Shown one piece after another: positions 16,201-19,200 of a stretch of 64,000 bases of DNA (its first letter is position 1; each line of letters starts with the position of its first letter). The position numbers and the translations under genes were made by a program. Source of the stretch: Phaeosaccion multiseriatum (lineage: Eukaryota > Protista > Ochrophyta, other classes); NCBI GenBank assembly GCA_965112735.1, contig OZ218951.1, forward strand, positions 5,704,001 to 5,768,000. The letters are read 5' to 3'. Below the pieces are notes generated by a model. The model was not told the origin of the DNA. It was given only the letters and a program-made list of their open reading frames with translations, and did not search any database.

Positions 16201-19200
16201 CTCTCTCTCCTGTCTGCTGTCTGTGTCTGCCTGTGCCTCGGCTGCCCATGCGCCTGGCTGCCCCTATGCCTGCCCATATGTCTTTCTGCCTACGTGCCTG
16301 CCTGTCTGTCTGCCTGCCTGCCTGCCTGCCTGCCTGCCTGCCTGCCTGCCCATACGCCTGCAGCTGGAGGGCGATGCGGGTATCGGCAAGACCGTGTTGC
16401 TTCATGGACTCAAGCACGACCTCCTCAACAGGGACCCCTCCACTGTGCCCACCGTAAGTAAATCAGAAAGGAGAGGAGGATACGATGCGGCTCTCTCTCT
16501 CTGTCTCTCTCTCTCTGTCTCTGTCTCTCTGTCTCTGTCTCTCTCTTCTCTCTCTTCTCTCTCTTTCTGTCTCTCTCTCTGTCTCTGTCTCTCTCTGTCT
16601 CTCTCTCCCTCTTTCTCTCTCTCTGTCTCTCTCTCTGTCTCTCTCTCTCCTCTCTCTCTCCTCCACTCACTTGTTCACTCGCCATACATAACTGACACAG
16701 CCATGGTCCTGTATGAGTGCGCGTGTGAGTATGCGTGTGCGTGTGCGTGCGTGCGAACAACTTGATACAACTTGCTACAACTTGCTACAACTTGCTGCTT
16801 CATTCACCAGGTGCGGGCTGTGACGGCATGCGCCGCGGAGATCGAGCAAAGCTCCCCCTACTTTGTGCTCTCAGAGGTTATGAAGGGTCTGATCGACTTC
16901 CTCGTGCCCCCCAACGAGAGGGGTGCCGTCGACCCTGTAGAGCTTGCCGACAAGCTCGATCCCTCGGTGCGTACACTTGTCCCGCTCGTACGCTACCTCA
17001 ACGTGCCGCTGGTGCAGTCCAAGAAGAAAAAGGTGAAGCGCAAGAGCATCGGGGGAGACACGTTGGTTTCCGCAGAAGGCACGTGTGTATCCACTGTGGT
17101 TGACTTCGGCTTTCAGCGCTTCAACGACACGACCTCCGGCGGCACGGACGGAGCTTGTCTCAGCCGCCGGGCAAGGAGTGGGGCCCTCAAAATGAGGGGA
17201 AGGAAGGCCTATGACAGCGCAGAGAGTCTGACAGAGGAGATGGCAGTTGCCCTCGCCAGCAGGCTCAAGCAGGTGCGTGTACATGTGGGTGTGTGTGCGC
17301 GCGTGTGTAAGTATGTATGTGTACGTGTGCGTGTGTGGGTGCGTATTGGTGTGGGTGCGTGTGCGTGTGTGGGTGCGTGTGGGGAGGGGGTTATGTTCGT
17401 GTCTGGGTGTGTGTGTGACCATCCCTCCCCCCCCCCCACCTGCGGCCATTGAAGGTGCTCCCCCTGCACGACACAGAGTGCATGGGCAAGCTCTATCTCG
17501 CCTGCTTCACAGGGCAGGCGTGTGTGCAGTGGCTGCTGGAGAACGAACTTGCGGGGGTGGAGGAGGAGGCCGTCGCCATCGGTGAACGCCTCATGGACTT
17601 CGCCACCGTCGATCACGTGCTCGGGGACGTGTACTTTCAAAACTCAGAAAAGCTCTACCAATTCAAGGTGAGTTGGGAGGGTGTTAGGTTCTATAACGGG
17701 GGTGTTAGGTTCTGTAACAACCACCACTGCTACGGTAGCTCCATTAGTAAGCAGCCTCAGCCTCAGCCTTCTTCTAACAAGCAACAACCTCCCCCTTCCT
17801 CCCCTCCCCAGAGCGACCGGCGCTGGGAGAGTGCCATCCGCCTTCAAGAGGCCACAGCCAAGACGCTCGCCGTCCGTCTGTCCCTCGAGGTAGGTCACTG
17901 AGCAGCCCATCCACTGCTATCCCCCTTGGTCCATCCACTGCCATCCCCCCTTGGTCCATCCACTGCCATCCCTCCTTGGTCCATCCACTGCTATCCCCCC
18001 TTGGTCCATCCACTGCTATCCCACTTGGTCCATCCAATGCCATCCCCCCTTTGGTCCATCCACTGCCATCCCCCTTGGTCCATCCACTGCTATCCCCCCT
18101 TGGTCCATCCTCTGCCATCCCCCCTTTGGTCCATCCACTGCCATCCCCCTTGGTCCATCCACTGCCATCCCCCCTTGGTCCATCCACTGCCATCCCCATT
18201 GGGCGAGCCCCCTCAGCCCATCCGCTCTGCCCCCCTATCCTCCTCCCCTTGAAGGTGGAGTCACGCGAAGTTCGAAGCTTTGACGCGGAGGGCCTGCCCA
18301 CCATCCGCCTGGGCTGTTTCTCGGGGGCCACGGCCGTAGCCTGGATGGTCAACGAGCGGGTGGCGTCTTGTGCCGCAGAGGCCACGGCCCTCCTGAGTCA
18401 GCTTGTGAGCTTCGAGCTCCTGGAGCCTGCGGACGAGGAGGAGGTGTGTGTGCGTGCGTGCGTGTGTGTGTGTGTGTGTGTGTGTGTGATAGTAGCTGGA
18501 CATGGAGATCACGCCGCACCACCATACCCTAACCTTCTCTCCTCTCCTCTCCCCTCCCCTCCCCTCCCCTCCCCTCCCCTCCCCTCCCCTCCCCTCCCCT
18601 CCCCCCACCCTCCTCCCTCACACTGCCCAGGTGGAACGCTTCAAGAACAGCGACTCTCACTACTACCGAGCGCGCTCTATGGCTCTCACAAATCTCCCTC
18701 CCACGCAGATCTTCAACACTTTGCAGCGCCTCTGCCTGGCCATCCTCCGGGCAGTGCTGCAGAAGGAGTGCCCTCCCCCCCAGCACCGCGTCGTCGTATT
18801 TGTTGACAACATGCAGGTGAGTGACGTCACTGATGCAGTGAGGGAGGAAGGCTCTCTCACTCACTCACTCACTCACTCACTCACTCACTCACTCACTCAC
18901 TCACTCACTCACTCACTCACTCACTCACTCACTCACTCACTCACTCACTCACTCACTCGCTCACTCACCTGACTCACCTCACTCACCTCACTCTGTCCTT
19001 CCCTCCCTCCCTCCCTCCTGTATCACCAACTGCCACAGTGGTGCGACGCAGGCACCATGGACATGCTCCTCGCTATTCTCAAGGAGGGAAAGGCCCAGGG
19101 GGGCAGAGCATCCGGACCTGCCAACCGCCCCACAGCCCCTCACGGCGGCCTGTCCGGCGGCGGCAGCTCCGTCACTTACACCACCTCTGCGTCTGGGCTC

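Follow-up and report, generated by a model that had tools for sequence, protein, structure and literature searches.

The DEP insert and its borders

What are two DEP domains doing between the nucleotide-binding motifs of a putative soluble adenylyl cyclase (sAC)? The question is raised by a plus-strand gene at 10257-24814 in a 64,000-nucleotide stretch of Phaeosaccion multiseriatum DNA (contig OZ218951.1, positions 5,704,001 to 5,768,000; “the window” is this whole stretch, and coordinates are counted from its first letter). A first reading, made from the letters of the window alone (the sequence-only reading), had placed two DEP segments between the Walker A and Walker B motifs of a nucleoside triphosphatase (NTPase) region. 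We confirmed both, through a Pfam match for the first (DEP1) and orthologues of each in a second alga, Phaeothamnion confervicola. The gene is predicted to encode an ADCY10-like soluble protein of ~2,500 residues, in which two class III cyclase domains (C1 and C2) are followed by a P-loop STAND NTPase and a helical region. We conclude that this soluble adenylyl cyclase does carry a DEP pair within its NTPase, that the arrangement is conserved in at least two ochrophyte algae, and that it is apparently undescribed. The architecture as a whole, cyclase-cyclase-NTPase with an inserted DEP pair, we regard as highly probable.

The insert is ~280 residues long and consists of a polybasic linker and two tandem DEP domains. 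It lies between Walker A and Walker B, which are ~393 residues apart in the window protein, compared with a median of 129 residues (range 106-173) in 111 pairs from relatives. The part of the gene that carries the insert and the flanking NTPase segments comprises seven exons:

16364-16453, + strand: exon 9, Walker A, GDAGIGKT
16811-17272, + strand: exon 10, 154 codons, namely 70 codons of an NTPase segment (16811-17020), then 84 codons of the start of the insert (17021-17272)
17455-17667, + strand: exon 11, DEP1 core, 71 codons
17812-17889, + strand: exon 12, first helix of DEP2, 26 codons
18255-18443, + strand: exon 13, first part of the DEP2 core, 63 codons
18631-18816, + strand: exon 14, last DEP2 strands, pre-Walker-B helix and Walker B strand VVVFVDNMQ, 62 codons
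19039-20112, + strand: exon 15, end of Walker B, WCD (the exon starts WCDAGT), then the remaining STAND NTPase and a winged-helix region, 358 codons

The transcript was modelled from the genomic sequence, with exon borders placed base by base in 16364-20112. All seven of these consecutive exons are in phase 0 at both ends, and the DEP1 core corresponds to exactly one exon. The four junctions predicted inside the insert (17272/17455, 17667/17812, 17889/18255 and 18443/18631) proved exact, all of them GT-AG and phase 0. The exon positions given by the sequence-only reading also stood; its layout had to be amended in that the exon with Walker B runs to 18816, the first helices of the DEP domains fall in neighboring exons, and Walker B contains D-N.

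The DEP hidden Markov model (HMM) scan that had been proposed for the spliced protein was run exon by exon, and DEP1 came out above the cut-off. The DEP1 exon matches Pfam DEP (PF00610) with 50.6 bits (E 1.9e-13), the curated cut-off being 32.7 bits, and DEP1 scored 49.5 bits in an independent six-frame scan of its own genome. Its sequence matches in the PDB are DEPTOR (1e-9), P-Rex1 (1e-8) and GPR155/LYCHOS. The first DEP2 core exon (18255-18443) reached 20.3 bits on its own, over profile positions 17-57, and stays under the cut-off because an intron splits the domain; it shares 66% identity with the DEP2 of Phaeothamnion. The next exon (18631-18816) is 59% identical to the contiguous Phaeothamnion sequence and aligns with the pre-Walker-B helix of relatives. 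The first helix of DEP1 is encoded by the end of exon 10 and aligns to residues 189-209 of the Phaeothamnion open reading frame (ORF), just before its DEP1. The first helix of DEP2, encoded by exon 12, is 42% identical to the stretch of that ORF directly after DEP1.

Both ends of the insert lie inside exons that it shares with the NTPase, so the link between DEP pair and NTPase holds independently of the splicing model. At the 5′ border, the conserved segment after Walker A and the first DEP1 helix are in one exon (16811-17272); at the 3′ border, the end of DEP2 is in one exon with the helix and strand of Walker B (18631-18816). The insert opens with a polybasic run, KKKKVKRK (17021-17044), followed by a basic linker with a net charge of +8 upstream of DEP1. 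This basic stretch could strengthen membrane binding or serve as a nuclear localization signal.

We considered several trivial origins of the pattern. A nested gene in an intron is ruled out, as both insert borders fall inside exons that also code for the NTPase. Chance likeness to DEP can be dismissed, given the HMM E-values and the orthologous DEP1 and DEP2 in Phaeothamnion. An internal duplication of the DEP pair is unsupported: DEP1 resembles a DEP domain on contig 1 of its own genome (7111890), the own-genome paralogue most similar to it, as much as it resembles DEP2. An assembly chimera is ruled out by DNA contigs from four sequencing runs, which span 16780-17900 unbroken.

A matching DEP pair in Phaeothamnion confervicola

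A partial protein of Phaeothamnion confervicola (P0001) is 56% identical to the exon 15 query. The 2.8 kb Phaeothamnion contig (L001) has one intron-less ORF (65-1891). It encodes a Gly-rich linker, then DEP1 with its first helix in front, then DEP2, likewise preceded by its first helix and a loop, and finally the helix and strand of Walker B. Continuous coding DNA thus corresponds to all four window junctions within the insert. Since the same stretch is intron-less in this contig, the introns were either gained in the window alga or lost in Phaeothamnion.

The Phaeothamnion ORF has two Pfam DEP matches that together score 98.4 bits, and the DEP2 orthologue alone scores 37.7 bits. Its PDB sequence matches are DEPTOR (3e-21) and P-Rex2 (1.8e-17). 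The DEP fold was tested on this orthologue, not on the window protein, whose DEP1 exon folded alone gave a poor all-helical model with a predicted local distance difference test (pLDDT) score of 64. In the model of the ORF stretch, DEP1 has a pLDDT of 83-96 and the order helix, hairpin, helix, helix, sheet; DEP2 was modeled with low confidence. A Foldseek search with this model returned DEP domains for all 48 best PDB matches, with the DEPTOR tandem (7dkl) first and Epac2 (4f7z, 2byv) among the best.

By best score, DEP1 of the window pairs with DEP1 of Phaeothamnion and DEP2 with DEP2. Because each window DEP domain is closest to its Phaeothamnion counterpart, the insert must predate the split of the two algae. 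The phase-0 exons and the one-exon DEP1 core are only suggestive of exon shuffling.

The ADCY10-type order of domains with a DEP insert, as put forward in the sequence-only reading, is therefore supported by exon phases, insert borders, the orthologous ORF, the HMM matches and the fold model.

The STAND NTPase and the insertion site

Walker A (GDAGIGKT, exon 9) satisfies the pattern GxxGxGK[ST] and aligns with that of relatives. Exon 9 has weak NACHT and AAA_16 P-loop matches, the latter scoring 14.2 bits, below the cut-off of 32.6 bits; the AAA_16 score of the Phaeothamnion protein P0001 (19.5 bits) is also under it. Both the insert and introns break up the domain. Despite these low profile scores, the window NTPase is clearly homologous to relatives that bear AAA_16. 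Exon 15 (19039-20112), the query of a full HMMER search, has 7,728 relatives at E<=0.001. AAA_16 is carried by 11 of the 16 relatives scanned with Pfam, 10 of which also carry Guanylate_cyc. Upstream of the insert, the first 70 codons of exon 10, to PLVRYLNVP, match residues 46-115 of a Chrysoparadoxa protein (P0005; E 9e-8) and align with canonical relatives.

Alignment with canonical relatives places the insert between the PLVRYLNVP helix, which is the helix after strand 2, and the pre-Walker-B helix. The same NTPase loop is ~20 residues long in those relatives. Inserts of ~190-300 residues between Walker A and Walker B also occur in Chrysoparadoxa P0005 (contig L002), in a raphidophyte-type protein (P0155) and in P0006 (L003). 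These ochrophyte homologues resemble the window protein in having long inserts at or near the loop that holds the DEP pair, but their inserts are low-complexity sequence with no Pfam domain and no DEP; the Chrysoparadoxa contig has no DEP between cyclase and NTPase. Because three other homologues carry long inserts there or nearby, the loop can be called an insertion hot spot, of which the DEP pair is a special case.

Walker B is encoded at 18790-18816 and 19039-19047 and reads VVVFVDNMQ followed by WCD across the junction. Of the consensus residues, the first Asp is retained, Asn stands in place of the second acidic residue, and Gln in place of His. The Phaeothamnion orthologue has VEVEDLHWAD at this position, keeping E-D-L-H-W. 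The D-N-M-Q of the window protein suggests that its NTPase may bind nucleotide without efficient hydrolysis.

Cyclase domains and the complete gene model

Tracing the gene exon by exon gave 20 exons with 7,539 nt and ~2,512 codons. All 20 exons are free of stop codons, every intron is GT-AG, and all junction phases are compatible. The exons outside the NTPase core are as follows:

10257-11364, + strand: exon 1, low-complexity N-terminus, then start of C1 with the first metal-binding Asp
11671-11881, + strand: exon 2, C1 continued, second metal-binding Asp (motif read from sequence)
12224-12926, + strand: exon 3, end of C1, linker and first strand of C2
13235-13306, + strand: exon 4, C2; GT-AG, phase-compatible
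13535-13664, + strand: exon 5, C2; GT-AG, phase-compatible
14831-15012, + strand: exon 6, C2
15214 or 15229 to 15328, + strand: exon 7, C2 to the end of the domain
15765-16021, + strand: exon 8, linker and the strand preceding the P-loop; phase-compatible GT-AG, putative exon start
20531-20743, 20906-21442, 21705-21959, 22952-23061 and 23461-24814, + strand: exons 16-20, helical C-terminal region

The start codon at 10257 is the first in-frame ATG and is putative. Exon 1 is stop-free with a GT donor, and the Guanylate_cyc regions of relatives align to 11190-11366; its junction with exon 2 is in phase 1 and completes a Gly codon. Exon 3 aligns to residues 110-300 of P0006 (E 7.6e-9). Exons 4 and 5 together carry GGYVNK|VIMDEKG with the adenine-side Lys, a motif read from the sequence. 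Exons 6 and 7 (14831-15328) hold the Asn/Arg motif of C2, and P0006 and P0105 align there. Downstream of the NTPase, a fragment from Choristocarpus (P0017) crosses the junctions 20112/20531 and 20743/20906. Exons 16-20 are GT-AG with compatible phases and lead to a stop codon at 24812-24814. The last exon contains a Lys-rich run and then a tail of well over 100 residues that is almost purely Asp/Glu (23600-24811).

The exons of C1 and C2 align in order to the Guanylate_cyc regions of P0008, P0105, P0021 and P0006. In P0006, cyclase and NTPase are encoded in the same order by one uninterrupted ORF, and this shared domain order supports the one-gene model. The C2 fragment from exons 6 and 7 scores 17 bits with Pfam Guanylate_cyc, and among PDB sequences it is closest to human ADCY10 (E 3.3e-5); two C1 pieces, searched in the same way, gave no match. 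As the domains are split by introns, no single cyclase exon reaches the Pfam cut-off alone, and most of these exons are blank in Pfam.

C1 carries FIDISGFT and FAGDA, and C2 carries MDEKG and SVNLAARL. By analogy with class III cyclases in general, we take these to supply the two metal-binding Asp residues in C1 and the Lys and Asn/Arg in C2. Because all of them are present, we infer that the cyclase is catalytically competent. The C1 sequence at 11671-11700 includes VDCFAGDA, in which Cys presumably occupies the position of the bicarbonate-site Lys of human sAC. With Cys at that position, bicarbonate control may differ from that of human sAC. No transmembrane-like segment was found: no 19-residue window of any exon reaches a Kyte-Doolittle value of 1.6, the maximum being 1.43.

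Comparison with known systems

The predicted protein resembles ADCY10 (sACfl) in having C1, C2, a P-loop STAND region and a helical C-terminus in the same order and in lacking a transmembrane segment. It differs from ADCY10 in the stretch of ~280 residues, two DEP domains included, that is added between Walker A and Walker B, in its long low-complexity N-terminus and acidic tail, and in the D-N of Walker B. The STAND/P-loop region of soluble adenylyl cyclase has no known role, and work in 2025 on purified full-length sAC found no regulator specific to it and suggested a missing binding partner (PMC12802110). Cyclase-AAA_16-TPR proteins, both bacterial and eukaryotic (for example P0003, P0007 and P0021), are homologous to the window gene in the NTPase exon (E 1e-15 to 1e-22) and share the order of Guanylate_cyc and AAA_16, but their Walker motifs are spaced by 106-173 residues, with no DEP.

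The DEP pair itself is most like those of DEPTOR and P-Rex1/2, which give the best sequence and fold matches and likewise have two back-to-back DEP domains joined by a short linker. In the window protein, however, the pair lies inside another domain rather than at an end or between domains, and its cores are acidic. No PDZ, DH or PH domain was found in any exon by the exon-by-exon Pfam scans, and the protein is without a PDZ, DH-PH or IP4P partner domain; the likeness is one of DEP modules, not of family membership. Epac provides another parallel, as a protein of the cAMP pathway with a DEP domain. Epac is a cAMP sensor whose single DEP adjoins a cyclic-nucleotide-binding domain, whereas the window protein is predicted to make cAMP and has two DEP domains inside its NTPase.

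Among the 150 best relatives of exon 15 (of 7,728), DEP was found in one, the Phaeothamnion protein P0001. The closest relatives are from Choristocarpus, Phaeothamnion and Chrysoparadoxa, in keeping with the sequence-only reading, which had taken the host to be an alga. A literature search found no cyclase with DEP domains; DEP domains have been described on oomycete receptor kinases. The earlier impression that this architecture was unfamiliar agrees both with that search and with the single DEP-bearing protein among the best relatives. A word-index protein search with P0001 returned only itself and three distant bacterial-type proteins. Look-alikes in the ESM Atlas were generic DEP clusters, none with cyclase or AAA_16. 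A metagenome scan gave one GC-rich compact relative, without DEP. Exon 15 found only weak matches elsewhere in its own genome, none of them near the five other DEP matches. The same genome (G000) has another tandem DEP pair on contig 3 (583785-584897; L005), within one open frame of 568 residues.

Possible roles of the DEP pair

Our best explanation combines the architecture with a DEP pair that serves as a protein-docking module, and we think this combination rather likely. The docking mechanism, taken by itself, is tentative, and we would put it somewhat below an even chance. The pair would most likely dock a protein, be it a partner that is a receptor or is anchored in the membrane, or a different part of the enzyme itself. 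The DEP domains of DEPTOR, P-Rex and RGS7/9 work through protein contacts. Protein docking is favored over direct lipid binding because both DEP cores are acidic, unlike lipid-binding DEP domains. The pair is embedded in the core of the NTPase, next to Walker B, so the nucleotide state of the NTPase could govern how far it is exposed, and such gating would couple the place or time of cAMP production to the NTPase switch. In its furthest form, nucleotide-gated docking would bring the cyclase to a receptor, or to a partner anchored in the membrane, and open a G-protein-free route from receptor to cAMP in ochrophyte algae. We consider this a long shot; if true, it would give a first hint from nature about the function of the sAC STAND region.

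Several observations weigh against these proposals. A search of sequencing runs turned up no RNA run of this organism; it gave only metatranscriptome rows of small share and four DNA-like runs, the four all from one sample. Those four runs yielded, over 16780-17900, unbroken genomic contigs that run through the introns, with no splice joints. The Phaeothamnion contig is too short to reach Walker A or the cyclase. DEP2 of the window was scored only in pieces, its 20.3 bits being those of the first. By charge count, with no surface map, both DEP cores are acidic, with a net charge of -8 each and an isoelectric point (pI) of ~4.2-4.3; on the same count they do not have the basic surface that characterizes lipid-binding DEP domains such as those of Dishevelled and Epac. 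Walker B, with D-N-M-Q, departs from the consensus D-[DE]-x-H (hhhhD[DE], then xHWxD). Finally, whatever is said here about the function of the window protein is something we infer.

An alternative is that the DEP pair is an internal regulatory or oligomerization module rather than a means of targeting, and that it would control how active the STAND module is or how it assembles. The pair might contact the cyclase or NTPase in the way that P-Rex1 DEP1 folds back on its DH domain, or might dimerize like the Dishevelled DEP, by domain swapping. The best matches to the pair, the tandem DEP domains of DEPTOR and P-Rex, act through protein contacts, and both the acidic cores and the insertion next to Walker B in the NTPase core would suit such a role. 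Contact with the cyclase or the NTPase is, however, conjecture, and such a module could operate alongside partner docking; we judge the internal module unlikely, though worth keeping in view. The sequence-only reading had suggested recruitment, and targeting to membranes and receptors is a known function of DEP in Dishevelled, Epac and RGS proteins (PMC5784254). The domains themselves might hold the cyclase at a receptor tail or at anionic membranes, so that it would be a membrane-recruited source of cAMP, and the KKKKVKRK run with its +8 linker directly upstream of DEP1 fits that idea. Yet no basic patch is evident in cores of such strongly negative charge, and the polybasic run could equally be a nuclear localization signal. 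On balance, anchoring by the DEP domains appears quite improbable.

We place at the same low level the proposal that the DEP exons are optional cassettes giving rise to isoforms with and without DEP. Exons 9-15 could each be skipped without a frameshift, being in phase 0 at both ends, but removal of the full insert would need more than skipping, as its ends share exons with NTPase segments, and in Phaeothamnion the whole insert is one intron-less ORF. Far less probable still is an artefact of the gene model or a decaying gene, in which the DEP segments would not be translated with the cyclase. The off-consensus Walker B and a gene model derived from DNA alone would allow for it, and an automatic annotation shows the Phaeothamnion stretch as two separate “genes.” On the other side, 20 of 20 exons are intact with compatible phases, the insert borders lie inside exons, and a second species keeps both DEP domains with their consensus residues, in order, in one ORF.

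On the reading preferred here, a well-understood docking module has been placed inside the NTPase of a soluble adenylyl cyclase and kept in at least two algal lineages, where it would offer a handle on the role of the STAND region. It would also be a clear case of whole-domain insertion into the core of a P-loop NTPase, at a loop that is expanded with disordered sequence in other ochrophyte homologues. If the protein is not made as modeled, or if the DEP pair is inert, the finding is a mere curiosity of gene structure.

Surrounding DNA

The window consists of GC-rich eukaryotic DNA with short exons and introns filled with microsatellites. The introns at 13665-14830, 17900-18250, 18840-19030 and 21960-22950 are largely long microsatellite or minisatellite arrays, which include (GTCA)n over ~850 bp, a 25-bp unit repeated ~11 times, (CTCA)n and (GGGA)-type repeats. 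In two of the four DNA runs, a 10-base insertion, ACTTGCTACA, was found at 16779 in an intron repeat, which suggests alleles that differ in length. Immediately upstream of the gene for the cyclase, the minus strand (7307-9616) has ORFs with His-rich loops (HGHDHHHHHH...) and the motif LLSDAFHNLSDV. From these features, they look like a gene for a cation-diffusion-facilitator (zinc transporter).

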